A DNA stretch of 64,000 nt, taken from assembly GCA_965235115.1 (NCBI GenBank), contig OZ249451.1, positions 17,174,001 through 17,238,000 on the forward strand, in the 5' to 3' direction. Made by a program: the position numbers and the translations under genes. A model generated the notes under the pieces. The model had not been told where the DNA came from. It was given only the letters and a program-made list of their open reading frames with translations, and ran no database searches. The stretch is from Laetmonice hystrix. Taxonomy: Eukaryota. Each line of letters opens with the position of its first letter. Positions within the stretch are counted from its first letter, which is position 1. Shown here piece by piece: positions 7,401 to 38,819 of the stretch.

Positions 7401-10400
7401 ACGGTTATCCAAAATGGCCAAGCGGTTCGAACGTAGAGCATTAGATTGCAACGGAGCCAGCTGAGCGTTCTCACATTAATTTTGGTTGGTCTCACTTCAA
7501 TTTATCTGAGTTTTACATGTGACACTAAGCTGATTTATATGGCAGGGTGTCGATATTACAGGTTTTAAAAACAGTGGACCTTTAAAATACGACCTCGGCT
7601 GTAACAGCACGCAGGTATTTTTTGTGAAGGCAGTATGAGATTTGTTGTTGCAGGAGTGTAATTTGTATATAATTTACTTACATCAGATAATATCTCAGGA
7701 GATCTGGAAGCCAGGTAATCCATGTAATATTGTCAGGATGTAGGCTATTGTCAATGAATTGTATACATCAGCTGGTGCTGTACTCTATATTAGTTCTCAC
7801 CTACGTCTGGCACAGTTTGAAGTGACGGAAAGGTAATCAGTAGAGGCACAGAGGGTATAGATACGACCAATTTGGTCAGGTTCCCTGGGCTTCTATGAAA
7901 TGGGTAGGGTAATGGTTGACCACCCGTTATCAGTCAGGTTGGTGGAGGGGTAGGGGTGGTATAGACATAGTGAGGACTGACGCCAACATCCATCCATAGA
8001 CAGGTGCTGTTATAGACATATAGGGAGGACTGACGCAAACATCCATCCATAGACAGGTGCTGTTATAGACATATAGGGAGGACTGACGCCAACATCCATC
8101 CATAGACAGGTTCTGTTATAGACATAGGGAGGACTGACGCCAACATCCATCCATAGACAGGTTCTGGTATAGACATAGGAAGGACTGACGCCAGCATCCA
8201 TCCATGGACTTGTTCTGGTATAGACATAGTGAGGAGTGACGCCAGCATCCATCCATGGACAGGTTCTGGTATAGACATAGGAAGGACTGACGCCAACATC
8301 CATCCATAGACAGGTGCTGTTATAGACATAGGAAGGACTGACGCTAGCATCCATCCATAGACAGGTTCTGGTATAGACATAGGAAGGACTGACGCCAGCA
8401 TCCATCCATAGACAGGTGCTGTTATAGACATAGGAAGGACTGACGCCAACATCCATCCACAGACAGGTGCTGTTATAGACATGGGAAGGACTGACGCTAG
8501 CATCCATCCATGAACAGGTGCTGTTATAGACATAGGAAGGACTGACGCCAACATCCATCCATAGACAGGTGCTGTTATAGACATGGGAAGGACTGACGCT
8601 AGCATCCATCCATGAACAGGTGCTGTTATAGACATAGGAAGGATTGACGCCAACATCCATCCATATACAGGTTCTGGTATAGACATAGTGCGGACTGACG
8701 CCAACATCCATCCATAGACAGGTTCTGTTATACACATAGGAAGGACTGACGCCAACATCCATCCATAGACAGGTTCTGTTATAGACATAGGGAGGACTGA
8801 CGCCAACATCCATCCATAGACAGGTTCTGGTATAGACATAGGAAGGACTGACGCCAGCATCCATCCATAGACAGGTTCTGGTATAGACATAGTGAGGAGT
8901 GACGCCAGCATCCATCCACAGACAGGTGCTGTTATAGACATGGGAAGGACTGACGGCAGCATCCATCCATAGACAGGTTCTGTTATAGACATAGGGAGGA
9001 CTGACGCCAACATCCATCCATAGACAGGTTCTGTTATAGACATAGGGAGGACTGACGCCAACATCCATCCATAGACAAGTTCTGTTATAGACATAGGAAG
9101 GACTGACGCCAACATCCATCCATAGACAGGTTCTGTTATAGACATAGGGAGGACTGACGCCAACATCCATCCATAGACAAGTTCTGGTATAGACACAGGA
9201 AGGACTGACGGCAGCATCCAGCCATAGGCAGGTGCTGTTATAGACATAGGGAGGACTGACGCCAACATCCAGCCATAGGCAGGTGCTGTTATAGACATGG
9301 GAAGGACTGACGCCAGCATCCATCCATAGACAGGTGCTGTTATAGACATAGGAAGGACTGACGCCAACATCCATCCATAGACAGGTTCTGGTATAGACAT
9401 AGGAAGAACTGGCGCCAACATCCATCCATAGACAGGTTCTGGTATAGACATAGGAAGGACTGGCGCCAACATCCATCCATAGACAGGTGCTGTTATAGAC
9501 ATGGGAAGGACTGACGCCAACATCCATCCATAGACAGGTTCTGGTATAGACATAGGAAGGACTGACGCCAGCATCCATCCATAGACAGGTGCTGTTATAG
9601 ACATGGGAAGGACTGACGCCAGCATCCATCCATAGACAGGAGGGACGGCAGAAGCAACTGCAGCCCTCGGCCCAAGTCCCAGGAGAGAACATAATTAGTC
9701 CGCATCCGCCTCGACGACACACGGTCCTTCACACCGCGCACCTAATTTCAATTTAATTAGACCCCAGGGACGTGTATGTCGGCCGAAGCGTCTAGGACGT
9801 AACTGTCTGTTGAAGCGTTCGGGATGTGACTGTCGGGTCTGTCGGGTGAAGCGTTCGAAACGTGACTGTCGGGTCTGTTGGGTGAAGCTTTCGAGACGTG
9901 ACTGTCGGGTGAAGCGTTGGGCACGTACCTGTCGGGTGAAGCGTTCGGGACATACCTGTTGGGTGAAGCGTTCGGGACGTGACTCAGTGGAGCAGATAAG
10001 CCGAACAATTGTGCATGTTATTTTCGACCTAGCAACCCATTCACTTCTATGTTAAATTAGCGACGTCGTTAAATAAGGACCTTTAGTAAAACCGGCCCAT
10101 ACTGGCACGCTTTGTGTGTTCCTTCAGAGCTGCATGTGTGGGAGGAATATTCTCCAGTGATCTCGACTTCTTGGAGAACAACTCCTTTCTGACTTCATTA
10201 ATTTCCAGGACGTCACTTGTCCTGTCGTCCATGAGGATTACAAACCTCTCAATTTGTGACTGTGCCTTCACAGTGAGGTTTTCCTGCATGTCAGCCAGCT
10301 CCTCAAAGGCTTCTGTTACCTCGGGGTACACGTTCCACATATCTATGATGTTGGGACCATTGAGTATCATGCTGACTAGGGCAAGAAGGGAACTTGGTAC

Positions 10401-16400: not shown

Positions 16401-19400
16401 CAATGCGTCTGGCATGGTACCCAAGGCGCAGAATGCTGGTGTGACGTCTATATAGGTGGACCAGGTGTCCCATACAGTCTTCTTGCCCCTGCCGCCAAAA
16501 CAGGACACGGTGTCACATCCAGTGAAGGTATGGAACATCGGCAAGGCCACACATTGGTCAGGACCAAGAGCTTTGGCGATCTCATGAGCAGCGATGAATC
16601 TGAAGCTCTTCCCAGCTCCAAAGGCAATCCACAGTTCAGATATGTTGAGGCGATTGGCTGATGCTATGGCCAGGACTACCACATCTGTGTCAACTGTTCG
16701 TATTGCCACTTTGCTGTATCCCTGTTGTACGGCATCCTGTAGGTGCAGGAGGATACGAGTGTCAGCCTCCTCATGAGTGCATGGCGTAGTCCCACCCACA
16801 CCCCACTAACCCCCACCCCCCGTCATGTAGTCCCACCCACACCCCACTAACCCCCACCCCCGGTCATGTAGCCCCACCCACACCCCACTAAACCCCACCC
16901 CCAGTCATGTAGCCCCACCCACACCCCACTAACCCACACCCCCAGTCATGCAGCCCCACCCACACCCCACTAACCCACACCCCCTGTCGTGTAGTCCCAC
17001 CCACACCCCACTAACCCCCACCCCCAGTCGTGTAGTCCCACCCACACCCCACTAACCCCCGCCCGCAGTCATGTAGTCCCACCCACACCCCACTAACCCC
17101 CACCCCCGGTCATGTAGCCCCACCCACACCCCACTAACCCACACCCCCGGTCATGCAGCCCCACCCACACCCCACTAAACCCCACCCCCAGTCATGTAGC
17201 CCCACCCACACCCCACTAACCCACACCCCCGGTCATGCAGCCCCACCCACACCTCACTAACCCACACCCCCGGTCATGTAGTCCCACCCACACCCCGCCC
17301 CCAGTCATGTAGTCCGTAATTTGAGCTTGTTTACTGCTGAAATGTCGCTGATACTACAGGAAGGAAGGACTTCGGACCGACTATTTGTGCCATTTGTGGC
17401 CTTGACCTTGACATTTGACCTTGGCTTTAATGTCGAATCAAAAGACGTATGCCACAGTTGGATTGCCTGCCTCTATATTGTAAGGAAACACTCCATTAAA
17501 TGTGGTTTTAGCCAACTGTCCTGGAAACCCCAGTTTTTTTGCCATTTTTGGCCTTGACCTTGATATTTGACCTTGACCTTGAATCACAAAACAAATGTCA
17601 AAAATGTTTGGGCGAAGCCCACATGGGTGACGTACGACGAGACCTGGACAAATTCCACAGAAATCTACGAATCAAATCCTTTTTTGATTTCCCCAATACA
17701 AAACCCAGGGCGACTACCTCGACCCCCAACCTCTCCACACCTACCTATTCCAGCAATTTGAATTCAGATGTGTAGAACAATATTAGGAAATCGAAAATCC
17801 TGAAACCAGACCATAAATGGACCCCCCCCTCCTTGGGACCCATTCACCTAGAAGCCTTTATTCTAGCTAACGAAATTGAACTTAACAAAACTATTGTTAG
17901 ATCACCGTTAGGCCACAACATCACCAAAGATGAGAAAAGGGCCCTGCACAGCTTATTAAACAATCACGACATAGTGATCAAACCAGCTGATAAAGGTGGT
18001 GCGATCGTCCTCCTTAACAGAGACGACTATAGTATATAGCAGAGGGAAAGAGACAACTCTCGGACCTTGGCTTCTACAAATCGTTGGATTCCGACCCTAC
18101 CGAATCCAACAACCAACAGATCAATCTCTACATTAACTCCCTGAGATTTAAGAATGAGATTACCCCCTCCCTGGAACGCAAACTTCTCACCACAGAAGCT
18201 CGCACCCCTTCCCTGTATCTCCTTCCGAAGATACATAAGAACAAAACTCCGGTCCCTTGCCGTCCCATAGTGTCAGCCAATGGCTGCCCTACAGAAAAGA
18301 TATCAGCACTTGTCGATATCTTTCTTAGACCCTACTTACCCAAGATCCCTTCGTATTTGAAGGACACTACTCATTTCCTCCACATTCTGAGGGATGTACC
18401 CCATCTCAAGCCAGGAGCCCTGCTCTGTACCTTAGATGTTGGCTCCCTTTACACCAACATACCTAACTTGGAAGGCATGCAAGCCACAGCACGCTACCTC
18501 TGCAAATACAGAACTTTGGGTCCAACACCAGAACCCAGCAACACTAGCCTGTGTTCACTCTTGAAAATGGTACTCACCATGAACAACTTCAGCTTTGATG
18601 GCAAACATTACCTTCAAATCGCAGGCACAGCCATGGGCACACGTGTTGCCCCGACCTATGCCAACATATTCATGTCAGATTTTGAATCTAAACATGTCTA
18701 TACCTACCCAGAACAGCCAACATTCTGGGGTCGATTTATCGATGACATCTTCCTCATTTGGGAACATGGCGCCGAGGCACTGGACCGTTTCATCAACCAT
18801 CTGAACAATGTCCATCAATCCATCAAATTCACTTCAGAAACTTCACTTGTTAAAGTGAACTTTTTGGACACCTGTGTTTCCATCTCCCCAGATGGCATTC
18901 TCACAACGGATCTGTACACAAAGCCGACAGATTCCAATAGCTACCTCTTGTACTCATCGGCCCATCCGACACACTGCAAAAGAGGTATCCCCTTCGGTCA
19001 ATTTCTACGACTTCGCAGAATTTGCTCCGATGATTTTGACTTTGTGAAACACTGTGTGGAAAAAGGCAAACACTTCCTACGACGAGGCTACCCATTTGAC
19101 CACTTAGTAGATAGCTTCACTAAAGCGAAAATGATCCCGAGACTGAGCTTACTTCAGAAAATAACTGACAAGTCTGACAATGAGTCACCAAACATCTTGG
19201 TTACAACTTATAACACAGGCTACTGCGGTTTAAAGTCCATTGTTACCAAAAACTAGGACATCCTTGGAAGATCTTGCTCCACCCCGGACATACATCAAAA
19301 GAAACTAATCACTGCCTTCAGAAAACCAAAAAGTTTGAGGGATATATTAGTCAAAGCGAGATTACCTACCAGGAAACCTCCCCCCACTCAAAATCTACCC

Positions 19401-24229: not shown

Positions 24230-25011
24230 CTTGCCACGGTGTACGCTATCACAGCGACTGAGGGGAGGTGGCGTGATGGAGTATTGTGACGCCGGTCGTC
24301 GGGGGGAGCCGTGCCTCCATCAACCGTCGGCGGGGGAGGGAGGAGGGGAGGGAATGAGGGGGGGGGATTGGTGGGGACAGGCAGGGACACACCGGTCCAA
24401 AATATATTCACTGGATTTTCGACAACTGCCTCGATTGGAACCAAGTGAAGAAATAGAACGAATCTGCCAAAAGTTAAAATACTCTGTACTCTGTAGTGGG
24501 TTCACTCTGTAAATCTAAATGCACGCTTACCTCATACCACACACCTATGAATTCCTATGAACGCCACTTCTTTACTAACCCAATCATGGTTATTTAGTCA
24601 CCCTTTTGCGTTTTTCCCCATTCTTTTTGCTCTTACCTAATCAGACAGGTTTTGCTCATTCATGACCAGTAGCCTAGCATGTTACTATTCAGTGTTGTTT
24701 TCAACGGCAGAGTAATATACTGTGTAAATACCTAAAATATTCAAAATCGATTCAGTGGAGATGCGTGTAACTACATCATGGCATAGTCGCGGGTAGAGAG
24801 CGACACCTAGTGTTAACATAGTTGACAATTCTTTCGGTTACCACTGACCCCTAACGGGAATAAAACGTCATCACCTCTACTGTCTCCAACATTATACCCA
24901 TTCCGTCGGCCTATTCAAAAACTTAAAGGGGCCCCGTCAATTAAAAGCCACAAAATCGACCCTTGTCATAATAAACAATCTAGATTTACCTGCAATCTCA
25001 TATTCACGACC

Positions 25012-25876
25012 TTGCGATTGACAGGTGGTGTTGGTCCAGCGGGAGAGCGGGAGACTCTGTGTGGTGCAGTCCAAGGACGACACATATTTGTTGCGATTGA
25101 CAGGTGGTGTTGGTCCAGCGGGAGAGCGGGAGAGCGGGAGAGCGGGAGACTCTGTGTGGTGCAGTCCAAGGACGACACATATTTGTTGCGATTGACAGGT
25201 GGTGTTGGTCCAGCGGGAGAGCGGGAGAGCGGGAGAGCGGGAGACTCTGTGTGGTGCAGTCCAAGGACGACACATATTTGTTGCGATTGACAGGTGGTGT
25301 TGGTCCAGCGGGAGAGCGGGAGAGCGGGAGAGCGGGAGACTCTGTGTGGTGCAGTCCAAGGACGACACATATTTGTTGCGATTGACAGGTGGTGTTGGTC
25401 CAGCGGGAGAGCGGGAGAGCGGGAGAGCGGGAGACTCTGTGTGGTGCAGTCCAAGGACGACACATATTTGTTGCGATTGACAGGTGGTGTTGGTCCAGCG
25501 GGAGAGCGGGAGAGCGGGAGAGCGGGAGACTCTGTGTGGTGCAGTCCAAGGACGACACATATTTGTTGCGATTGACAGGTGGTGTTGGTCCAGCGGGAGA
25601 GCGGGAGAGCGGGAGAGCGGGAGACTCTGTGTGGTGCAGTCCAAGGACGACACATATTTGTTGCGATTGACAGGTGGTGTTGGTCCAGCGGGAGAGCGGG
25701 AGAGCGGGAGAGCGGGAGAGCGGGAGACTCTGTGTGGTGCAGTCCAAGGACGACACATATTTGTTGCGATTGACAGGTGGTGTTGGTCCAGCGGGAGAGC
25801 GGGAGAGCGGGAGAGCGGGAGAGCGGGAGAGCGGGAGACTCTGTGTGGTGCAGTCCAAGGACGACACATATTTGTG
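25012..25876. repeat. Compound VNTR: 9 units of 79-111 bp, each with an internal (GGGAGAGC)n tract
   Basis: Unit starts at 25012, 25091, 25186, 25281, 25376, 25471, 25566, 25661, 25764; n = 1,3,3,3,3,3,3,4,5. Confidence 0.93.
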
Positions 25877-26844
25877 ACAAAGGCTCAAGTCGGGGAACTG
25901 CCGTGACGTCACCGGTAAGAATATAGAACCCCCCACGGCCGGATCACTCCCACACCACAGCGTTACGAAAAGGGAAGTCCTTCCATCGGACTATTCGGCA
26001 GCCTGCTGACTTGTGCCGTGACGAATATTGTTTTTTTTATGAACAATATATTTATCCAGGAATACCAACTTGGATATTAATGCCGTTACAAATGTACGGT
26101 CCTGCACTACGGGGGCTAACACCTTTCTCGAATATGGAGTCCTCTGTGAGACTGATGTTAAAGCAGTCTGTCCAGTTCCTGGGAAAGTAGTGTTGCAATT
26201 CTTATGATGTCTTGGGCAGTGTTTCTTGATAATCTCAATATTCATTTCTTTACTTGTTTCATACCACCATTCTGTCATGATCTTCGGACTACTGATATGC
26301 TATAGTATTCTTCAGATTTTTTTATTTCGCCCTGCTCGCTCATTATAAATCTATTTGTATAGCCCTACATACTAGCACTGCATATGATTGTACAACGGAT
26401 ATTAAAGTAATAAACATACTACTACTACTACTACTCCTACTACAACAACAACCTCTATGCACATCAATATCAATCAGTTTATGCCTACCATCATGCAATG
26501 GGGGACCGTTAGAAGATGCATTTACAATAAAATCAAGCCGAGCGTAGCGAGGCTGACAATTTTTGTAGGTGCCCCCCCCCCTCCTTTATCAAAATCCTGG
26601 ATCCCCCACTGATCATGTTAGTCGAAGCTGGAGTCGCCCGTTGAGCACTTTATAAAAGACGATGCTTACCCTTCCACAGTCTGGATCCGATATACAATCA
26701 TATCTCTGCAGAATCTACATGCGATATTTCTCAGCCAGTTTAAAAGATGCTTACGCTGCCGACCATTTAACTTTGATAGCGGGGAGATTTTCGCGACGTG
26801 TCCAATGAAGAACGTCACGAGGGTGCTTTGTCAAAGCCGTCCTG

Positions 26845-27548: not shown

Positions 27549-30500
27549 CTAGATTCTCGTTTGGAGTGGTTGTGCCTGGCCCTGCCAAGCAGGCCAAGTA
27601 GGGGTTTCGTTAGACACAGTAGAACCAGAGTTGGACAGGTTATCAGCACGTTGAGATGTTGCGTATCGAGAGATTCCTTTTGGTGGGTTATGTTCTGTCA
27701 TGGCAGGGGATGCGACTGCTGATGTCGCGTGCTTACTACCAACGCCATGCAGAGGTGAAACGCCTGGGGTCTTACTACTAAACCGTCTGCATTGCTTGAT
27801 TATAAAAGCACTGACACGCAGAATCAGCGCTAACACTACTATGATTGCCAAGGCGATTGGAACTGCCCCCAGTAGAATCAGCTCGATAGTATCCCAAATG
27901 TAGAGTACTGTGTTGGCCGGACCTACGGGTACCTCACCGGACTGGAAATATGCTGATTTTAACAGATTCATGATACTAATCAGTAATAGAAGAGACAGAG
28001 AAATCGTTTCAATTCTGTTGCTGAGATTCAGTGCAAAGGGATGGAATCGGATTTGAAGCGTTAAAATAAAGAAACACGCCAACATTATGCCGACGTGACG
28101 ATAGAGTGCTGTCGACACCAAGGTAGCCAAAAGAACCAAGACGAGCCTGCGCAGAGCTATCATGCCCTCCCAACAAAGTCCTCTCCAAAGATCACTACGG
28201 TATGGCTCAGCCACAATTTCAACGAGAGCATCCACCATGCCACCTTCTTTGAACCCATCTTCATTCTCTTCATCTGACTGCTTTAATTTCTTATCCAAAG
28301 GCTTCTGGTCGCGCAAGAATAGATAAATCAGGAAAGGTGTGCTGAACAGCGGCAGAAGAATAGATATGATGAACGTCCTGACCTTGATAATGCGACGTTT
28401 GAGAAGGACAGGCGCCAAAGCTAATACAAGAAAGAAGGGAAAAACATAAATGGCAGCAAATACTAATACACCGTATTGCCAGGCCGTGTAGCAGTTAATG
28501 TTTCCATTTATGAATAGAACAGGTTCTGTCTGTGACGCAAGATTGACACACTTCACCAAACTAAAACTATTCTCTGCAAAGTACTGGTAAGTGTACAGGA
28601 GAAGGTTGACCAAGGCCCCCATAAACTTTGCATCAAAGTTCACTTTTGACCAGATTCGCATTTTAGTCGACGCTGGCCGGTGAGAAACAATACATTTGAT
28701 CAAAAGAAACATCAAAGCCCAGACGAAGAACAAGTACACAGTAAACCCCGACTTAATCCAGGTCTTGTGGACAGCCGTGACTCCAGTAGATAAACATGTG
28801 TTCAGATGGATTCCAAATGTATTGAAGCTGAAAATCCCTTTAATGCCATTCTGAATCCGTTCAAGAGGGCTTGCCCTATCATCCTCATAAATTATTTTCA
28901 GCTGAAGAAGAGCAGCTACTTGGATGTAGTACATGAAGATTTGTAAGTAGCCGCCATCTTTGTCAGACTCCTCTTGTTCCTCCTGTTCTGCCCCCTTGGA
29001 ACACTCTTTCTGTTCCTCACTACGGCATATTATTTTTTTGCAAGATGCCGTATGCTTCTTGAACCAGTCCATGAAATTTTGTAAGATCATTGCTAGTTCA
29101 TCCTGGAGGACGAAGAAACACACGTACCCAATGCCATACAGCGCAACCACCGCCAAGAACCAAGTAGCATACGTACATTCTCTGTCCCTAATACACTTAC
29201 TGGAGAACAAAGATTCAGAGTACCCCTTGTCGCAGTGTCCGCACATGACGCCTATACGGTTAGCGCCACACTCGTTGAAGGTTTTACAAACAGAGTCCTG
29301 ACAACAGTAATCCTCTGGGCATGTGTACATGAAGATTTCCGACTTGATGGCTTCTCCCCAAAAGTTGGCCTTGGCCTTCACGTCGTGTTTACAGTGCGCT
29401 CCATAGGGGCACGCCCTGCACGCAATTCTATTGTCGTTCTCAATGACAATCGCGTCATCACCACTTCCTAAGACAAGAGAAGAACCTTGCAGGCTGTAAT
29501 GGCCAAAGCTACAAGCTTTGCAGTAAACCAGTAACGTTGCGACAGGTTTGGAATCATTCGACTTTACGTATTCGTAGACAGCTTTGGTTTCGTATCCCTC
29601 CGGACAGGAAAGGTTGATATTTCTGGGGGTCATGTAGCTTGTATCGTGGTCGGACCTGTAGGATATAACTGACATTTCGTCTACTGCTGTCAACACCTTG
29701 AAATAGTTGTCCTTCATATCGAGGACACCTTGTGACTCCAATATGTCGCCAATCCTTGGACGAATCCCGTTTGCAACGTCGGTATTTATGAATTTGTTCC
29801 CGTCCATGATAGTCGCTACACCTGCACTAAAATGCAAAGTACCACCGTAGCTTTCAGCAGTGTTGTTGGTGAAGGTGCTATTATAAATGCCAATAATATT
29901 CCTACACATCGAACAAACAGGAATAACTGCTATAGCACCTCCGTTGCCAATAACTCTGGACATTTGAAGCTCTTCATTGTCCAACTGGTTGCTAATACTT
30001 CGTGCAATGTTATTCGTAAAATTGCAGTCAATTGCTCTGATGCCAATTGCGCCGCTAGTTTGATCAACCAGGATTGCCCCGCCGGGACCAAAGGCCTCAT
30101 TATTTGTGAACTCGGAGCCAACTATGAGCAGGTTTGCTTGGTCTGTGTCTTCTATATGTAAGTGTAATGCTCGGCCGTTACTCACAAACTTGGTGGACAA
30201 AATGTCAACGTTGAATACTGTATGCATTATGACGGTTACGGCAGCATGTGAACGGGACTTTAAACCCTTGATGACACAATCCAGTACCTCCAGACTGCTC
30301 TCTCGTAATTTGGTGGTCCGTGCCTCCGTCACTTTCTCAGATGACGCAGCAGTCCCACTGGCCAATGACCGCCGACGTCGAATGGGTTCAGACTGGTCAT
30401 TTTGAGCATCCTCCACATTTTCCTCCACATATATTCCAGAACGAAAGAGTAGCCGAGCTTCATCGTCTTCTGCTGAGGATTCAAAGATGATGTCACGTAG

Positions 30501-30996
30501 ATGAACCCATATTAATTTGGCTTGTATTCCCAATACGGTCGAGACAAAGCGACAGTGTGAGATGACAACCTCAGCGACCACGATGCCTTTATACATGATA
30601 CCATTTTCGTTATATCCTGGTTGATATGTCATAATTCTTGACCTCATTATTTCAGAATTGTCCATTGTAATGATCATCAACTGTGTATTCTCTCTTCTGT
30701 AGAAGTCTTGTTGAATGGTTGCATCTGAGAGGTTCACCGACGATAAAGCGAGTTGTCCTTGTCCAATATACACATTACCGCTAACCGAAATATGCGATAA
30801 ACTGAATTGTACATCATACCCGTTGCCGGTATCAGAAACCACCAAGTCTTTCAAGTATACCTCGATGGGTTTTACCGAAGGCTGCCCGACGATGGCCAAC
30901 TCCCGGTTAACCCAGAAGTTCGTATCCAAGACATAAGGGCCAGTGTCGTTGGCAATCTTCACGACGGCGAATCGCGATGCCCTCGACAGTGCGTAT
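27549..30996 (-). CDS. Receptor exon 10 (3448 nt): beta-helix-like repeats, Cys-rich linker, multi-TM region, cytoplasmic tail
   Basis: Long ORF with repeats FTNNEAFGPGGAI, FTNNIA...GNGGAI, FTNNTAESYGGTL; CP.DYC...C...R.GVMCG.C..GYS; about 9-10 hydrophobic segments. Confidence 0.9.
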
Positions 30997-33900
30997 CTAG
31001 TGCAGGTAAAACTTAACTTAGAAATTAATAATGTTTTTCCTCGAATTTTTAGGATTTAATTTTTTTGGTGAATTTAGCAGATTTTTATTACAATTACCTG
31101 AGAGTCTGACATGGTGAAGAATAGGATCCGCACGATGTGGAGTCGACTCCCTTGTTTCCATTCAGCCATACAGTTCGTTTTGAATGAATACCAATCTCTG
31201 CAAGTGAAAACATTCCCAGTTTACTGTGAGATATTTAGAGGTATACAGTCCTTATAATGTACACAGACTGGCCAACAGTATTGCAACATTCCCTCATTAG
31301 AAACATTCTGTAATACCAGTTCAGCGCATTTAACATTTCAGCAGTGCGGAAAGTGTCGTTAGCCAACAGGACATTTTGTTGCACTATACCAAAAGTACGA
31401 GAATTGACAAATGCAGAATGGAGAGAAATCATTTACCTCACAGAAGAGGACGTTCCCGTTTCAGAAACACCTCAATGACAGATAATTAACATCTCTCTAG
31501 TAGTTTTATCATTTATTATACATTCCCATATGTTAACAGTGGTCACAAGACCATTGCCTACATTTTCCGGGATGTATTGATATTTTGTATACGTTAGGAC
31601 ATGGTTGAGTGTGTTGCACCAGATTTATAGATGGCTTCTAACTGGGCATATTGCAAGACTTGTGGCCAATGCTTATAATACGTATGCAGTTTCGTATATA
31701 GACACGTGATACGTACCTGTTTCACATTCAGCCCCATAGAAGCCGGCCTGGCATGCACGGTAACACGTCCCAACACCATCAAAACATTTAGCTCCATTCA
31801 GGCACGACTTTCCCAAACAATCGTCGGAGATATCTGAAACTCGTGAATTCCGACATCTTCAATGATGGAACATGGTCCTGTTACGAGATAATAATGACAG
31901 CATTTTAAATCCAATATTTACTTAATTAGGGCCTAAACAGACGTCAAACCTAGCGAGGCGTTCCTTTCATCCTGTCCATATGAACATTAGAAGTTTAGTG
32001 TTTACAATCTCCTTATAAACCATCAACACCAATCTGGCTAAAAGGTCCATGCTCAATAGCTGGCCAGGTACCTGTGCAGCAGTTCTTGCCGCCCCAGCCT
32101 TGCAGGCATTGGCAGCTGAAAGTCATGGTTGACGCCATCGAGGTGCAGGTGCCACCATTCTTACAGGGCAGCTCGCTGCAGTAGTCCACTGGAACACCCA
32201 ATAGTCAGGAGTAATTATCAGGTAATAATACATGTTTGAAACTGTCATTCGGATAGCATTTGATGATGGAACAATGGAGAAAAACGTCAGCTGTGCTTCC
32301 GATTTTTAGCCCCCACAACGAGGGGCTTATAATTCGCCCTCGGTCCGCCCGTCGGTACGTCGGTGCGTCCGTCCCCTACGTACGTCCGTATGTCCGTAGA
32401 CAGCGATTTCTCAGAAGTGTATGCGTCGATTTCTTTGAAACTTCACACAATGATCAGGGATGGACAGAGGATGATGCACGTCAAACAGATTTTTGATATC
32501 ATTCAAAATGGCCGCTTGGCGGCCATCTTGGATGTAAACACATTTTGAGCAATAACTCAGCCAAAACAATCACGATTTCTTTCAAACATGGTGCAGGGAC
32601 GAGGCATAATGAGGGCCAATATGCATCACAATGAAATTTCAATTCAGATCGAAAATGGCGACATGGCGGCCATATTGTTTCTTGACCCCAACAATGACAC
32701 TGTTTTGGCTTATATCTTGAAAATGGTGAATGATAACGCCATAGTTAGTATTATTGACAGATAGGAAGTCACATATGAAGTTTCATTTGGCACCATTTTC
32801 CAAAGCTTTCCATTTTATAAAGGTCTAATAAGGTCATGCATATTTCCAATGATTTATATCTCCAAAATTATGTAAGATAAGCACATACATGTATATACTA
32901 TTGAACATGGACAGGAAGTCATATTTGGTATTTTCTGTTACCCCAACTGAAGGTCAAAGGTCATTCAAGGTCACACACCTTTTGAATGACTTGTATCTTG
33001 CATTATCATTTGCAATGGCCTGTATCCCCAAAACATTACAGATAAGCATCAATTACACAATTATCATGGGCGATCTGAGGATGATGCAAGTACAGTTATG
33101 ATATCACTCAAAATGGCGCATTGCAACCATCTTATTAGATGTAAACACATGTCAAGCAATAACATGGACAAAATAATCTCGATTTCTTTCAAACGTCAAG
33201 AGACATGAGGTGTTGTCAAGAGACATGAGGGGCACGATGCATTGCAATGTATTAGTTACTAGGATGCAGACGAAGTACATACGAAGTTTTATTTGACAAT
33301 ATTTCCTTTGCCCTTCAAAGATCAATTGAAGTCGTTTATCGTTTGTTCAAGAATCCATAGTTCTTAATGGGGGCCATACGCTTCACAAGCTTGCTAATTA
33401 TGTATAGCTAGGTAAGAGTAAACAGTCCTACCTTCGACCGACTGAAGGCATAGTTCTAACATTTGCATTGTGCTTGTTTCAACAAATGGAGCTCCTATGT
33501 TAATGGAAATAAATACTCAAGATGATGAAATGCGGATTTTTTTCTATTCAGATTTTACTGGATGGTGCTGAGAACAATATGAGCAGTATTGGACAGGCGA
33601 GCGGTTCCGAGAGGATTTGTTTGCCACGGGATTGTCTACAAGTCAACGCAAAACCGCTCGCAATTTAATACAGTTGGTAAACAGAGGAGGCTCCTTTGTT
33701 TTGCTACGACCCCAAGAAAAATATTTGAAAATCTGAAGTATTTGTCCGCCAACATGGCGCTCACTCTGTCCAAGGCGATTCCCTGCTATTGAACACTTCC
33801 GGGAATTGCCGACGTTTTCCGATTGTCCCCATCTATTTTCGGAAAAGTGGCAAGGGTCTTTTTATATACCCTGTCACACAGACATAGCTTGCCATTCAAA

Positions 33901-36900
33901 AGCCTTTGATAACTTTGATAAGTGGGGAGCACTGAACAGGATCAAGGAGAATAATTGTACTGGAAAGACAACAAATTGTATCATTTAAAGTTATTAAATC
34001 TACAAAAAGCTTTGTTTGTTTTATGTCACTCTGTCCTTACCGGAACAACCGACCTCTGGTCCCTCGTCGTCGCCACCAGGACAGTCTTCCATCCCGTTAC
34101 ACAGCGAAGTCAAGCTGACTGACACCTTCTTGTCGGCACACATGTAATGGTCTGTAAGACACGCGGTGAGCATAACCCTATTAAGAGTAATTATTAATTG
34201 GCCTTTTCACATTAAGGGTTACGGTGTCAACCATTCATGTTTTTGTTAACATTAAAGCGAAGGTTAAACCTGAAAATGTGTCGCATCTGAAAAGGAAATA
34301 TATTATGCAACAAAATCACATTAAGGATCTGAAAATGCAGAAACCTAATGAGTAATGTTTTGGACTTTTTAAACTCGGAACTTTGGAAGCAATGGACGAT
34401 GCAGCATACTAAATAAAAAGCTTACCCGCGAGGGCAGACGCCACCACCTGGCACCATATATTATATCTCAAACAATCTGCCACAGGTCAGAATTTCAATA
34501 TGAAGTTAACCACTCGGGTAAAAACAGAGTAAAAACAGACTGTTTGAAAAAAGGTAGGGACCTAGAATATCACGGCCTAAAGACATACCTTGACCAAAAT
34601 GTCTTTAAACTCAAACTCAGAGAAAAACATTCCTTTCATAAACGGGAGAGACAACAGGATTAAAGTGCTCGAAAATCTACGGATCGAGGGGGCGTCTTCC
34701 ATTTGTCACAGAGCAAGACGCCTCGTTGCTAAAGGCGATTTACCCTCCCTTTGAGAACCGCTGGTGAGCCGACGTCGGTTGAGACAAGACAAAACCAAGC
34801 GACCCGATTATCGTTTCATCATCGCTTCTGTACAAACGCCATCGCTTGTACTATCGCTTATGTGGGCCCTTGAACCTTCTCAATCGCTTATACTCACCAC
34901 ATATACTTCTATCCTCTTCCGAACAGTCAGTGCAGTCACATATACGATTGCAAACACGACATTTTCGTACCGACTGTATCTGATCCGCACAATGGAAGTA
35001 ACCTATGAAAGAAAAATTCAAAAATACAGGGTGTACCAAAAAAAAAGGTAATCCAGAAAGGATCTTCCGTTAATATGAAACATTTCAACGATGCGTCTAT
35101 ACGCGCGGTGCCTCACAAGACGAGAGGATAAAGGCACGATAAAAGACTTTACGTGCGACTTTTTTGGTGATTTTTCTGGTGTCTTTTTACTTCAAACATG
35201 CAGGAGGTTATGAGGAACCCCTGTCTGTATGTCGAGGGCCGCGGGGAGTGAAAGTCCTCACCAGTACACCCAACCTTCTCATCCTCGTCAGAACCATCGC
35301 CACAGTTGTCCTTCCCATTACACAAGTCTACTAACGCCAACTCTATTCCGTTATTACAACAGAAGGCGTCGCCAAAGAAGTCTGAGGATTCCACTGAAAA
35401 GAAAAGACACAAAGCAGGGTACATTAAGGAGGGACACTGAAGTTTATGTTAAATAAACAACAAAACAAAAAAGTGCTGAAAAAGGTGGTTGTTCTTTACT
35501 ATCATGGGCGATGATGACCCTCTGTCCAGACTTGACGCTTTGTGTAACTAGCATTCTAGCAGTCATGAATTTGAAAGTCTATTTTTCCTATATGCACGTA
35601 CACACTACCTCTTGTGAAGTTTGGCCTTCTACAGAGCGACATGGTTTCCATCCCATTGGCGTCGTATTTGGGCAGCTCGAGGCGTAGTGTGATCTCAAAG
35701 CCCTGGTATTCCACGTCAGAGTCTGATGTAAACAACAACGTCACCTTGTCCTCCCTCACAAGGATCCCGTTCAGACCTCCTGGCTTTCCTTCCCCACAGA
35801 ACCTGTAGTTTTGTTCTCAATCATTTCATGTCTATAATTCTAATTATTGAACGTCAACGAGTGGAAGATTCTGTAGTCAGCATAGGCTTAGATCTATCTA
35901 AATCTTCCTATATCAGATCTAGGGGATGTCAGAAGTTTGGGAGCCGCCAGCCAAGGAGCATCGTAATCCTTGTCTCAAGGTCTATAATCCATTTTCTAGC
36001 TCAAAGCCTTAAAGTCTTGATCGATGTGAAGCCAGGAATCCATGTGTCCGCTGTGCGTAGTGCGTAATCAAAACAATGAAAACGCGCACTACGCACAATA
36101 TGGACTCACCCCAACGTGTTTTCATTGATTTTGATGAATACGCATTACGCAGTAAGCAATACGCATCACGCCCACACTACGTACATATGGATTCCTGGCT
36201 TTCCTCTACTATTAGTGTTATTGCTTATGACATGTTTATGTCTCAATGACAATTTTTATTGTACATTTACGTTTGCTTGTGTGTAGGTCTAATGTGTGAC
36301 CCTTCCCCAGAAGAAGAAAAACCCCAAAGAACCATCAAAGATGTGCACCCACCGTGCTAAGAAGTTGTTTTCTCCTACTCGTACTTCTAACGAATCAAGA
36401 CACTGTCCGTCGTCGGTCGCTCTCTCCAATTCGAAATAGCAGAACGAGACCCGAATATTGGCCTTTCCGCCTGGCGGTGAGGTGATAATCCAGGTACAGT
36501 TGGCGTATGGCGGGTATGTGTCAATGTTAGACAGTGGGTACTGAATCATACCTTCATCGTTCTCTAGGCTAAGCTGTATGACACCGCCACAATCTGGTAC
36601 ATCACCTGAAAGAATCAATTATACTGGCTTAAAGCCAGGAATCCATGTGAACGTGGCGTGATGTGTAATGCGTACTGCGTAATGCAAAATCAGTGAAAAC
36701 AAATTGGAGTGATTGCATGTGTGCGTAGTGCTTAATGCGTGTTTTCATTGTTTTGATTACGCACTACTAACACATTGATTCCTGGCTTAATTTCTTCTGA
36801 AAATGTTCTTGGAAAAGTTACGATTACGATATTTCCCACGATGTCTTGCAATTTGTACATAACTGGGGGGAATAAGAGGAAGTTGTCTGTGAGAAGCGTC

Positions 36901-38819
36901 AGACCTTTACGAAGTCTAGTAATGTACTGTGCTGAGAACTAGGAACCAGGAGGAATTTTTCCGGTTCTGATGTTCTTCAGAGGTCACGTAAACAACATGG
37001 AGAAAGACACTCAATTTTGGAGTAACCGGTTTATCATTACAGGAAATACAAGATAATATGAAACAAAATACACTACGATGTAAATATTTTTGCCGCTAAC
37101 CCAAACGGAATAATCATAGGCCTGATAATGTATGATCCAGCTTTCAACAAATCTTTCTGCGTCACACGAATATCTTAAGCATCTTTATGAAAAGACCCTT
37201 GGGAAAGTTGAGTTACTCACGAGGCGTATTCTATTACCTCAACAGGACCCATGTACACGACAATGTAATAACTACTATTTGCTGATGTCTGCCGTGTGCG
37301 CATAGCAAGGAAGTCTCTGGCGCTAAGGGTTCGGCCATGAATGGGGCTTGTTTAACATGGATAGTACATGTCGTGAGAACTTTTCTCCCGAGTGGTCCGT
37401 AAAGAAAGAGGGATCAAGAACTTGATTGAGACCCTTGACTTGGTAAACACCAAACGTGTTGACGTTTACTTGGTATTCTCGGGGAAGGCGAACTAAACCT
37501 GAGGAGAATCAACTATATAGACAGCATGTCTCTCCCAGAAAAAAATAGAGGGGGGGGGGAGAGAAAAGAGGAAGAAAGAGGATGGGTCGGCGCCATTGGT
37601 GATAGTATACACAGTCCCTGAGATTTACAAAAGGACATTGAATACAAAAATTGTGTACGACTATAGGTCATAAACGCAAAAGACACAATCCCAGAATCCC
37701 ATGGTGCCGGAGATGATCACGGCATGAGTACGTCCAGGAGAGTTGAGGGTAGCTAAAAATGGAAAGTGACTACAAAAGTAAAACAGGGCCCGGTTCGCAA
37801 TACTAAGATATCTTGCTTAAGCTTAAGCTTAACATTTCTGATTGGCTGATTGTCACACATTTAAGCTGCCTTGCTTAAACCGGTGACAACTAGCCAATCA
37901 GTTGCATTAAGCTTAAGCTTAAGCAAGATGTCTTAGTATCGCGAACCGGGCCCTGGACTTAGTGGCGGCAGATCCAAGTCCTACCGTTTGAAGATCTGGC
38001 GTCTGGATAACACACGATAACACTTTGAGAGCCAACTGATTTGGAACCTTGCCGCAGATTGAGCCCACTGACGGGGTACGGGTTGTATTGCTACAGACAC
38101 GCCACCCTTATCGTCGAGTTACATCCTAACCTCTCCAAGTGGACTGGTGCCTCGCAGTTCTCTACAGTACGGTACTACCGTGGTGTAACTTATACATTTT
38201 GTTTATAACCACTTCCAGGTCGGGGACCAAAGAAAAGGTGTGTTTAACACCTCGAGGGGGGTTGCTAGCCTTTAGAGAGCACCGGAGCTGCTCCCAAACT
38301 TTCACAGAAAAATTGAAAGAAACGGACATTTTTCAACATTCGGAGTGCATTTTCCTGTCGACCAGGAACCTGATACTCATTACTATAATTTGCACCAAAA
38401 CTAACTGAATATCTGAATTAAACGTATGTAAAACATTTTTTTTTAAGTTGCTTCGCCTATAATGATTCATGAGCGTTTCGTTTTGGATCGATATTTTGAC
38501 ATTCATGTCGATTTATCGTAGCAAAAAACAAAATATCGTGATGCACCGATATATCGATTAATCGTTTCGGTCCTAGTATTTCACTCGTTTCTGATGGGCT
38601 AATAACATCTCCATTAATACATCTACAAGCCTCAGTCTTAATAAACAAGGAAAACATATAAAACGATTTTAGCTGATACCAGACATGAAGATAACCCATG
38701 ATTGCACTATACGTATACGTACCTGTTGACGAGTCGGCCGTGTCAATTTGTCTAATGGTCGCCAGAAGAAGGCATGACAACGGTATCAGAATCCTATATT
38801 TAACCGGCTGGCGCTGCAT
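27549..38819 (-). CDS. Multi-pass membrane receptor-like protein: SP-CUB-LDLa x3-EGF x2-beta-helix-like repeats-Cys-rich-about 9-10 TM; 10 exons, about 1557 aa
   Basis: Exons 38819-38723, 36605-36353, 35802-35609, 35393-35262, 35002-34898, 34151-34041, 32188-32072, 31833-31717, 31197-31098, 30996-27549. All GT-AG and phase-compatible; total 4674 nt = 1557 aa + stop. Confidence 0.82.
31098..31197 (-). CDS. Receptor exon 9 (cap motif of the beta-helix-like region)
   Basis: RTVWLNGNKGVDSTSCGSYSSPCQTL, donor |GTAATT. Confidence 0.75.
31717..31833 (-). CDS. Receptor exon 8 (EGF)
   Basis: DCLGKSCLNGAKCFDGVGTCYRACQAGFYGAECET, phase 1-1. Confidence 0.8.
32072..32188 (-). CDS. Receptor exon 7 (EGF)
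   Basis: YCSELPCKNGGTC...FSCQCLQGWGGKNC, phase 1-1. Confidence 0.85.
32304..32800. mobile_element. Possible Helentron-associated (HINE/DINE-like) non-autonomous element
   Basis: TTTTTAGC start, short subterminal palindrome, GTCC/CGTC-rich microsatellite, AAAATGGC..C.TGGCGGCCAT motifs. Confidence 0.4.
34041..34151 (-). CDS. Receptor exon 6 (LDLa)
   Basis: YMCADKK...LCNGMEDCPGGDDEGPEVGCS, donor |GTAAG. Confidence 0.8.
34898..35002 (-). CDS. Receptor exon 5 (LDLa)
   Basis: YFHCADQIQSVRKCRVCNRICDCTDCSEEDRSIC; acceptor TTTCATAG|, donor |GTGAGT. Confidence 0.75.
35262..35393 (-). CDS. Receptor exon 4 (LDLa)
   Basis: FCCNNG...LCNGKDNCGDGSDEDEKVGC, phase 1-1. Confidence 0.8.
35609..35802 (-). CDS. 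Receptor exon 3 (CUB, C-terminal part)
   Basis: RFCGEGKP...VTLLFTSDSDVEYQGFEIT. Confidence 0.85.
36030..36200. mobile_element. MITE (AGCCAGGAATCCAT TIR family), copy 1
   Basis: AGCCAGGAATCCAT ... ATGGATTCCTGGCT. Confidence 0.78.
36353..36605 (-). CDS. Receptor exon 2 (CUB, N-terminal part)
   Basis: CGGVIQL...YPPYANCTWII...SFCYFELE...CLDSLEVR. Confidence 0.85.
36633..36787. mobile_element. MITE (AGCCAGGAATC TIR family), copy 2, Harbinger-like
   Basis: TIR AGCCAGGAATC/GATTCCTGGCT; TSD TAA at 36630-36632 and 36788-36790. Confidence 0.8.
37787..37952. mobile_element. MITE, PIF/Harbinger-like
   Basis: TIR GGCCCGGTTCGC.ATACTAAGA.ATCTTGCTTAAGCTTAAGC, flanked by CAG/CTG. Confidence 0.8.
38723..38819 (-). 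CDS. Receptor exon 1 (signal peptide)
   Basis: MQRQPVKYRILIPLSCLLLATIRQIDTADSST, phase-1 donor |GTACGT. Confidence 0.65.

Follow-up and report, generated by a model that had tools for sequence, protein, structure and literature searches.

Which kind of protein is encoded where a head of CUB, LDLa and EGF modules precedes a beta-helix and a multi-pass membrane domain, and do these parts belong to one gene? This question is raised by positions 27,549 to 38,819 on the minus strand of the window, a stretch of 64,000 nucleotides from Laetmonice hystrix (assembly GCA_965235115.1, contig OZ249451.1, positions 17,174,001 to 17,238,000 of the forward strand) to which all coordinates below refer. The window DNA is eukaryotic and contains no N runs. 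The original prediction, made from the letters of this stretch, had described an unusual receptor whose CUB-LDLa x3-EGF x2 ectodomain is grafted on a beta-helix, a Cys-rich segment and about 9-10 transmembrane helices. According to our analysis, the locus very probably encodes a surface receptor of the architecture CUB-LDLa-EGF/beta-helix/stalk/multi-pass domain. From the N- to the C-terminus, the predicted chain comprises a putative signal peptide, a CUB domain, three short LDLa-like modules, two EGF modules, a right-handed beta-helix of the polymorphic membrane protein (PMP) type, a Cys-rich stalk, 9-10 membrane helices and a tail of 90 amino acids (aa).

Gene model

Every candidate donor and acceptor site was scored, and the best consensus sites were chosen as splice joins. 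On the minus strand, ten exons are spliced to one open frame of exactly 1557 aa, and all nine introns are of the GT...AG type; the complete model of about 1557 aa that had been proposed originally is thus reproduced. Exon 10 (30996-27552), named the large exon in the following, lies in a stop-free frame of 1168 codons that extends from 31055 down to 27552 and is followed by the stop codon. Upstream of this frame, short Cys-rich open segments are found on the same strand. The module exons are of the 1-1 phase type; the exceptions are a phase-2 intron within the CUB domain and a phase-2 intron ahead of the large exon. The sequence motifs that had been listed for the C-terminal half (F.NN.A...GGAI, CP.DYCC...NR.GVMCG.C..GYS, LFING...CY, PY...WEG.I.LRRL.L and HPF....N.IE..SL) all occur in the translation.

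Pfam was run on each exon or open segment separately and not on the spliced chain. The proposed order CUB-LDLa x3-EGF x2 is borne out by Pfam for the CUB domain, two LDLa modules and EGF 1 (Table 1); LDLa 2 and EGF 2 are recognized through their orthologous counterparts only. All three LDLa-like modules have the short four-Cys form. In tblastn searches of ortholog loci, exon 4 with the first of them is matched in L013 (E = 1e-10), L016 (1e-9) and L025 (5e-8), and exon 8 with EGF 2 in L013 (1.5e-9), L016 (8e-13), L017 (4e-13), L011 (2e-12) and L025 (3e-9). The start of exon 6 is the least certain junction, because its Pfam match, which was obtained with the whole open segment 34024-34206, begins at a Cys near 34160, ahead of the acceptor that was chosen (34151). 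The leader encoded by exon 1 combines a basic n-region with a hydrophobic core (ILIPLSCLLLATI); the signal peptide was called by eye.

In EGF 2 (31717-31833), the fourth Cys has moved by two residues, which gives T-C-Y-R-A-C instead of the Y-x-C-x-C of orthologous exons. This shift may be a lineage-specific disulfide rearrangement.

One gene or two

Two neighbouring genes might have been wrongly joined, one coding for a secreted CUB-LDLa-EGF protein (exons 1-8) and the other for a protein with a beta-helix and a multi-pass membrane domain (exons 9-10). Three public sequencing runs from one sample carry this DNA. Because introns are covered as evenly as exons, these runs represent genomic DNA and confirm no splice junction, which leaves room for two genes. 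The same is true of the automatic gene calls on orthologous contigs, which give the large open reading frame (ORF) only, and of the fact that heads of this kind are missing from most family members. However, the automatic calls are prokaryote-style ORF calls and as such unable to join exons, and a relative with seven LDLa modules plus beta-helix, stalk and membrane domain in one unbroken ORF (P0090) demonstrates that such fusions occur.

Four lines of evidence argue for one gene. The first is collinearity. The same exon order on the same strand recurs in three loci of two other assemblies, at about 40% protein identity. Locus L013 on a 1.9-Mb contig (P0001, ~40% identical) contains the second CUB exon, LDLa-1, the odd LDLa-2, LDLa-3, EGF-1 and EGF-2, followed by the large exon. 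L016 (P0006, ~40% identical), a second copy in the same assembly, has CUB, three LDLa, several EGF, the cap exon that corresponds to exon 9, and the large exon; L025, a contig of the different assembly, has LDLa, EGF, EGF and the large exon. On three short contigs, the cap exon lies 0.2-1.3 kb from the large exon (L011, L014 and L017), and two of these (L011 and L017) also contain EGF-2.

The second line is polymorphism. Of the ten variants listed in exons 2, 3, 6 and 8, the predicted frame makes nine synonymous (three of four in exon 2, three of three in exon 6, two of two in exon 8), where the random expectation is 0.22 (P ~9e-6, with transition bias ignored and the variants being those listed). 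This leaves one listed non-synonymous variant in 1226 exonic bases. The upstream exons are under coding constraint. Third, a start codon with its own leader is absent from both exon 9 and the large exon, in contrast to paralogs L004 and L005, in which a hydrophobic leader is located right before the beta-helix cap. Furthermore, no in-frame stop follows EGF 2, and all junctions are phase-compatible with strong GT-AG sites. Fourth, very high-copy repeats are confined to the predicted introns 1, 2 and 6. Exons 1-10 are predicted to be a single gene on these four lines (collinearity, polymorphism, leader and repeats), all of which are indirect, and the existence of two separate genes is highly improbable.

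Two further observations concern the introns. Intron 9 (30997-31097, 101 bases) contains at least six variants in two of the three runs; the sample is highly heterozygous. The summed word depth of the repeats at 32300-33500 (intron 6), 35900-36300 (intron 2) and 36700-36900 (intron 1) is ~2,500-280,000, compared to ~25-90 in the flanking DNA, and the many rearranged joints of these repeats are typical for copies of transposable elements elsewhere in the genome.

Origin of the head

Beta-helix, stalk and membrane domain form a cassette that is not rare. An exhaustive HMMER search with the large exon over 1.84 billion cluster representatives yielded 2017 matches at E <= 1e-3, 631 of which also reach E <= 1e-30, in line with the large and mostly uncharacterized family that had been anticipated. 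Among the 150 representatives listed, the phmmer E-values range from 1e-267 to 1e-55 across query residues ~260-1070, values that chance does not explain. Most family members comprise 1000-1300 aa and are aligned from the beta-helix through the last membrane helix. A word-indexed single-sequence protein search returned three matches only, and a profile search was swamped by bacterial and archaeal surface proteins with PMP repeats and was uninformative on eukaryotic architectures. A literature search for the architecture, for Chlam_PMP in animals and for DUF7630/DUF7631 gave nothing relevant; the earlier statement that no characterized protein of this architecture is known agrees with this result.

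The genome of L. hystrix (627 Mb) contains at least ten paralogs, each of them one long ORF. In the four paralogs whose ORF reaches the N-terminus, the beta-helix cap comes first; CUB, LDLa and EGF modules and the cleavage loop described below were not found within these four ORFs, whose upstream DNA was not searched. Judged from these sequences, the CUB-LDLa-EGF head looks like a graft of one orthogroup, which is represented by one copy in this genome. The term "grafted" of the original prediction is appropriate, since orthologous loci in other assemblies keep the head and the four paralog ORFs of the same genome are devoid of it.

Other heads occur in the family as well, namely seven LDLa modules (P0090), Notch/LNR (one ESM-Atlas cluster) and LRR (a cnidarian cluster named for DUF7630). 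Atlas clusters reach 0.95 by features and a TM-score of 0.67 by structure; where taxa are recorded, the Atlas neighbours are from Cnidaria and Porifera. The number of EGF modules varies inside the orthogroup, because L016 has extra EGF-like repeats between EGF-1 and EGF-2 (L016:7513-7923). In AFDB and the Atlas, stalk plus membrane domain are found under many heads across eukaryotes, including chytrid solute-binding, Sushi, IPT/TIG, laminin-EGF, LRR, START and TIR domains.

Beta-helix, convertase loop and stalk

The Pfam profile Chlam_PMP matches the large exon with 24 bits (cut-off 20.6; E = 3.8e-5). An AlphaFold2 model of large-exon residues 20-640 (ma983ab0402cf, 61 aligned sequences) is all-beta and has a pLDDT of 90.6 and a pTM of 0.89. 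With this model, Foldseek matched in the PDB the tailspikes of phages HK620, Sf6 and CBA120 (from E = 4e-6), PL6 alginate lyases and chondroitinase B, and also the autotransporter passengers UpaB and Ag43 and the adhesin PfbA. In terms of the predicted model, the fold of the ectodomain is that of glycan-binding and adhesin proteins. The identity of the beta-helix to close relatives is 31-42%.

The beta-helix is interrupted by a loop of ~40 residues with a pLDDT of 52-57, compared to >90 in the adjoining coils. Length and sequence of this loop vary widely among close relatives. A site R-x-K/R-R is nevertheless aligned in every close relative whose sequence includes the loop (11 of 11), and a second site is present in several of them; no such site was found in the ectodomain of the four paralogs of the same genome whose ORF covers the region. 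The R-R-R-R/S site is absent from the original prediction and was newly noticed here. Based on the motif, it is reasonably likely that a proprotein convertase cuts the loop.

The Cys-rich stalk of 144 aa that follows the beta-helix contains all Cys columns that are invariant in the family. Its neighbours in AFDB carry the names Ephrin_rec_like and GCC2_GCC3. The hidden Markov model (HMM) of DUF7630 matches the stalk in 48 of 81 relatives, and the protein itself is unmatched at E <= 0.1; applied to the whole genome, this HMM gave one borderline match, which lies elsewhere.

Membrane domain

Hydropathy reveals nine clear hydrophobic segments and one amphipathic segment, and an AlphaFold2 model of the stalk and membrane region (mb2451da4ba4d, 81 aligned sequences) has a pLDDT of 89.5 and a pTM of 0.88. 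Both indicate 9-10 helices and thus more than in a G-protein-coupled receptor (GPCR), as had been supposed. No other part of the protein is as well conserved as the membrane domain, which shares 44-51% identity with close relatives; invariant or near-invariant polar residues are located in or beside the predicted helices (Gln173 at helix 2, and Asn474, Asn491 and Glu519 at helices 8-10, in the numbering of alignment A1).

Pfam did not match the membrane region, and no solved structure was matched when the membrane model was compared to the PDB by means of Foldseek and VIA-align. The following comparisons of its fold involve predicted models on both sides. Foldseek matched AFDB clusters with E = 3e-22 to 2e-10 across the whole stalk-plus-membrane model; among them are "TRP C-terminal domain-containing", Ephrin_rec_like and GCC2/GCC3 proteins, chytrid solute-binding fusions and Plasmodium CRMP2. 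Matches to Swiss-Prot models were DDB_G0281931 (E = 7e-10, TM-score 0.55), Pkd2 (3e-4), SadA (3e-4), YOR365C (5e-4) and Flc1 (7e-4), further Flc2, Flc3, S. pombe trp663 and trp1322, and C. neoformans Flc1 (5e-3 to 3e-2). All these superfamily matches have a probability of 1.00, whereas unrelated multi-pass proteins remain below 0.45; nine reviewed PF06011 proteins are matched by fold with E = 3e-4 to 3e-2 and TM-scores of 0.29-0.38. In ESM-Atlas, TM-scores of 0.60-0.67 over 434-453 residues were obtained for clusters with PMP, LRR, or Ephrin_rec_like plus PF06011; the latter cluster has a TM-score of 0.60 over 434 residues. Clusters with PF06011 have TM-scores of 0.60 and 0.37, and one row has 0.71 by target.

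With the PF06011 HMM (cut-off 28.5 bits), this protein is unmatched and a single one of 81 relatives is detected (E = 1e-4); the ML-like lipid-binding TRP_N domain has no Pfam match in any exon. Because the HMM fails while the fold matches, we speak of likeness to a superfamily and not of membership in PF06011. The resemblance to TRP-like FLC/Pkd2 proteins (PF06011) that had been suggested therefore stands at the level of the fold (Foldseek probability 1.00, Atlas TM-score 0.60) but not at the level of the HMM. According to the models, the membrane domain is probably kin to the superfamily that comprises PF06011 proteins, CRMPs and SadA. Plasmodium CRMP2 and the "TRP C-terminal domain" proteins stand side by side among the AFDB and Atlas neighbours, which suggests that the membrane domain of the CRMPs belongs to this PF06011-like superfamily rather than being GPCR-like.

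When the transmembrane region was compared by Foldseek to GPCR and TRP/FLC folds, as the original prediction had proposed, TRP/FLC models were matched and GPCRs were not. An ordinary 7TM GPCR or adhesion GPCR was rejected, since there are 9-10 helices, no GPCR above noise in the PDB searches with Foldseek and VIA-align, and no 7tm or GPS match in Pfam. A canonical TRP or polycystin-2 channel (tetrameric, with six transmembrane helices) was likewise rejected: no TRP or PKD2 structure is among the PDB matches and Pfam gave no ion-channel match.

The model fits a topology with the N-terminus outside, in which the invariant Cys residues before helix 1, before helix 3 and in the hairpin after helix 4 would face outside. 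Basic residues are found after helices 1, 3 and 5 as well as after the last helix; the basic stretch in the latter place suggests that the tail is on the cytoplasmic side. The C-terminal T-R-I (27552-27560) was considered as a class I PDZ ligand and rejected, as the tails of close relatives are unrelated in sequence.

Function

The following sequence of events is proposed. An ancient eukaryotic cassette (PMP beta-helix, TNFR/ephrin-like stalk and 9-10-helix domain) would have gained the head and the loop with the furin site in this orthogroup. The product would be a receptor of the plasma membrane with its N-terminus outside the cell, and on its way through the secretory pathway its loop would be cut by a proprotein convertase. 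Both halves would remain joined, as in Notch S1 or GAIN/GPS heterodimers, because the beta-helix is continuous and the cut falls between two of its coils. The binding of a ligand (protein or glycan) or a mechanical pull on the head would be transmitted via the rigid stalk to the membrane domain, which would answer with a flux of cations, probably Ca2+, or with an equivalent intracellular signal, in analogy to stretch-activated Pkd2 and the contact-sensing CRMP complex. For this statement as a whole, a convertase-cleaved surface sensor of contact or ligand that elicits a cation flux or an equivalent signal, we see an even chance. Actual ion conduction by the membrane domain, which is argued by analogy, is doubtful. 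The candidate role of a sensory or innate-immune receptor or channel, which the original prediction had put forward, is likewise a hypothesis.

Several points weigh against this mechanism. The public runs with this DNA are all genomic, so that consensus sites, conservation and polymorphism are the support for the exon joins, and cleavage at R-R-R-R is deduced from the motif. The TM-scores to the models of Pkd2 and Flc are low (0.25-0.38, both sides being predicted). The PF06011 HMM was unmatched across the genome; control genomes were also blank, so that this search is a weak one. We know of no experimental structure or pore architecture for any superfamily member, and channel activity is unreadable from a model. 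SadA and the CRMPs are among the characterized relatives and have no demonstrated channel activity. Finally, with ten crossing helices, as in the model, the tail would lie outside; only a re-entrant hydrophobic segment would change this. On account of an invariant Pro (A1 position 363) alone, we suspect that the segment containing it is a re-entrant hairpin, which would result in nine crossings and a cytoplasmic tail, the arrangement known from TgCRMPa (PMC9670195).

The strongest competing explanation is a non-conducting adhesion or scaffold receptor that acts via partners, the cytoskeleton or trafficking; its multi-pass domain would anchor the protein and offer a platform for assembly. Genetics defined SadA, which has nine TM helices and EGF repeats, as an adhesion receptor (PMC2173991), and SadA is reported to control the surface levels of another adhesin (PMC3279395). 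The CRMPs work in a multi-protein complex, for which no channel activity was shown (PMC9670195). Likewise in favour of this explanation, the modules of the ectodomain are adhesive or ligand-binding, and the structurally closer AFDB neighbours are of the CRMP, GCC2/GCC3 and Ephrin_rec_like type rather than Pkd2/Flc. In contrast, an anchor would not require that the membrane domain be better conserved than the beta-helix, and the invariant polar residues in or beside the helices exceed its needs. Moreover, the one relative that has been reconstituted, S. pombe Pkd2, lets Ca2+ pass upon membrane stretch (PMC9727806). We regard a non-conducting receptor as possible but unlikely.

More improbable still is an FLC-type protein of the cell interior, a carrier or homeostasis factor that would handle flavin or Ca2+ in the ER or Golgi and whose N-terminal part would be lumenal. 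The yeast Flc proteins, which have the same fold, are reported to regulate the transport of flavin and the homeostasis of Ca2+ (PMC9600462). However, a head of ~1000 aa in which CUB, LDLa and EGF modules precede a beta-helix of the adhesin type, and which has nine N-glycosylation sequons and a convertase site, typifies surface or extracellular proteins, and Pkd2, SadA and the CRMPs act at the plasma membrane (PMC9727806, PMC2173991, PMC9670195). A divergent G-protein-coupled receptor of the adhesion-GPCR type is scarcely credible given the rejection of a GPCR fold above, although PANTHER labels TgCRMPa and PfCRMP1 "GPCR-like" (PMC9670195), one AFDB neighbour (rank 6) has an automatic GPCR-profile name and the large, modular and cleavable ectodomain resembles that of adhesion GPCRs.

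The convertase-cleaved sensor can be formulated more specifically as a metazoan "tethered receptor-channel". The cut within the beta-helix would generate a non-covalent two-piece ectodomain, and a ligand captured by the CUB-LDLa-EGF head, or a mechanical pull, would separate or strain the pieces and thereby gate a Ca2+-permeable domain of the PF06011/CRMP type. This specific form is a conjecture to which we assign little likelihood. If it were true, the logic of Notch, adhesion GPCRs and polycystin-1 would have been rebuilt on an unrelated and structurally unsolved scaffold, and animal proteins, fungal Pkd2/Flc, SadA and apicomplexan CRMPs would be one ancient superfamily of contact-sensing channels.

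Features of the locus and its neighbourhood

The features of the predicted gene are compiled in Table 1.

Table 1. Predicted exons and protein features of the locus, with positions in the window.
Feature	Position	Strand	Evidence or remark
Exon 1: start codon (38819) and leader resembling a signal peptide (aa 1-33)	38723..38819	-	phase-1 donor CAG/GTACGT
Exon 2: CUB, first two thirds (aa 33-117)	36353..36605	-	Pfam CUB E 5.8e-6, profile 2-67
Exon 3: last third of CUB and linker (aa 117-182)	35609..35802	-	Pfam CUB E 6e-3, profile 74-109; L013 E 1e-3, L016 E 2e-5
Exon 4: LDLa-like 1, canonical D-G-S-D-E acidic cage	35262..35393	-	Pfam Ldl_recept_a E 5e-3
Exon 5: LDLa-like 2, divergent (C-x-C-x-D-C-S-E-E)	34898..35002	-	no Pfam match; same odd variant at the same position in L013 (E 1.6e-5)
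Exon 6: LDLa-like 3	34041..34151	-	Pfam Ldl_recept_a E 2.8e-5, 24.7 bits (cut-off 24.1); L013 1e-7
Exon 7: EGF 1	32072..32188	-	Pfam EGF E 4e-8; L013 5e-8, L016 9e-10, L025 5e-12
Exon 8: EGF 2, fourth Cys displaced	31717..31833	-	no Pfam match; aligned by tblastn to orthologous EGF exons
Exon 9: beta-helix cap (..G.D.TSCGS.SSPCQTL)	31098..31197	-	phase-2 donor; matched immediately ahead of the large exon in L016, L014, L017, L011
Exon 10, first part: PMP-type right-handed parallel beta-helix (aa 409-868)	29619..30996	-	Pfam Chlam_PMP; AlphaFold2
Flexible acidic/basic loop interrupting the beta-helix	30300..30419	-	low pLDDT; hypervariable
R-R-R-R/S, furin-type proprotein-convertase consensus (aa 615-618)	30369..30380	-	translation verified
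Cys-rich stalk (aa 873-1016), TNFR/ephrin-receptor-like	29175..29606	-	invariant Cys columns; Pfam DUF7630 in relatives
Multi-pass membrane domain, 9-10 helices (aa 1021-1467)	27822..29162	-	hydropathy and AlphaFold2
Ser/Thr/Pro-rich tail of 90 aa, ending in T-R-I, and stop codon (27549-27551)	27549..27821	-	translation

Four other regions of the window are conspicuous. An ORF of 570 codons at 8010-9722 (minus strand) has a match to an XPG N-terminal nuclease domain (E = 2.5e-13) and probably represents one exon of an XPG/FEN-family nuclease gene. At 18084-19256 (plus strand), an ORF of 390 codons in a region of strongly negative GC skew has a weak RVT_1 match below the cut-off (E = 5e-5); this is probably a retroelement remnant. 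A neighbouring gene is represented by an ORF of 532 codons at 58931-60529 (minus strand) that contains the catalytic domain of a copper amine oxidase (E = 7e-80) and an N3 domain. The region 24937-25936 has a GC content of 0.54 and overlapping open frames of ~300 codons in several frames on both strands, the sole Pfam match of which is spurious and of low complexity; it is probably a simple or tandem repeat.

Comparison with known systems

The cassette is already known as thousands of unnamed database proteins, and its membrane fold belongs to a known, structurally unsolved superfamily. New are the conserved CUB / LDLa-like x3 / EGF x2 head on the cassette, the conserved convertase loop within the beta-helix and, at the level of predicted models, an explicit link by fold between animal proteins, fungal Pkd2/Flc, SadA and the CRMPs. 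Among the protein families that marine invertebrates and protists possess, that of the cassette is one of the larger ones, and no studied animal member was found. The gene provides a representative of this family that is both well defined and conserved, and the well-understood ligand-binding modules of its head and its predicted maturation cleavage site make experiments feasible.

Compared to the uncharacterized proteins that combine a beta-helix (Chlam_PMP or Beta_helix), DUF7630 and a multi-pass domain, the large exon matches throughout: in its PMP repeats, in the invariant Cys residues of its stalk and in every membrane helix. The orthogroup differs from the typical cassette in the added CUB, LDLa x3 and EGF x2 modules, an extra N-terminal beta-helix segment of ~200 aa and the convertase loop.

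In the vertebrate proteins LRP3/10/12, NETO1/2, MFRP and matriptase/enteropeptidase, CUB and LDLa modules form a Ca2+-dependent ligand-binding head on a membrane protein; the NETO proteins are auxiliary subunits of ion channels. These vertebrate proteins are single-pass or protease-linked and are not known to possess a beta-helix or a multi-pass domain. In Notch (S1 furin cut), adhesion GPCRs and polycystin-1 (GAIN/GPS), a large ectodomain is cut within a folded domain and the pieces are held together until a ligand or force acts. The relation to the protein studied here is one of analogy only: the membrane scaffold is unrelated, the cleavage is predicted, and Pfam detected no GAIN, GPS or LNR-HD domain in the exons.

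The fungal PF06011 proteins (S. pombe Pkd2, S. cerevisiae Flc1-3 and YOR365C, and C. neoformans Flc1) share a common membrane fold with our protein over approximately helices 2-10. They have no beta-helix and no Cys-rich stalk, whereas our protein has no TRP_N domain and no HMM match. The Dictyostelium proteins SadA and DDB_G0281931, which were matched by Foldseek as stated above, are nine-TM proteins with ectodomains of the EGF type or with LRR. They differ in having other ectodomains, no beta-helix and no convertase loop, and they are amoebozoan, not metazoan.

The CRMPs of Apicomplexa and ciliates resemble our protein in that a Cys-rich stalk of the EGFR/GCC2_GCC3 type is directly followed by about nine helices, beneath modular adhesive heads. 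The model of Plasmodium CRMP2 is matched with E = 2.4e-10 and a TM-score of 0.53 across query residues 7-537, that is, the whole stalk-plus-membrane model, and a Tetrahymena GCC2/GCC3 protein with E = 1.5e-10. The heads of the CRMPs are Kringle, MAR or EGFR-like as opposed to CUB, LDLa, EGF and beta-helix here, and the sequence identity is ~14%. In alveolates, the CRMPs serve the regulated exocytosis of rhoptries and mucocysts. For Toxoplasma, they are described as proteins with nine membrane helices and are proposed to be host-contact sensors that trigger rhoptry exocytosis; the N-out/C-in topology of TgCRMPa was shown experimentally (PMC9670195).

The links by fold would thus join animal proteins to three groups without solved membrane domains, namely Pkd2/Flc, SadA and the CRMPs, the last of which are needed by Toxoplasma and Plasmodium for invasion. 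Once one member is understood, the others would be informed by it, including how the CRMPs convert host contact into rhoptry discharge.

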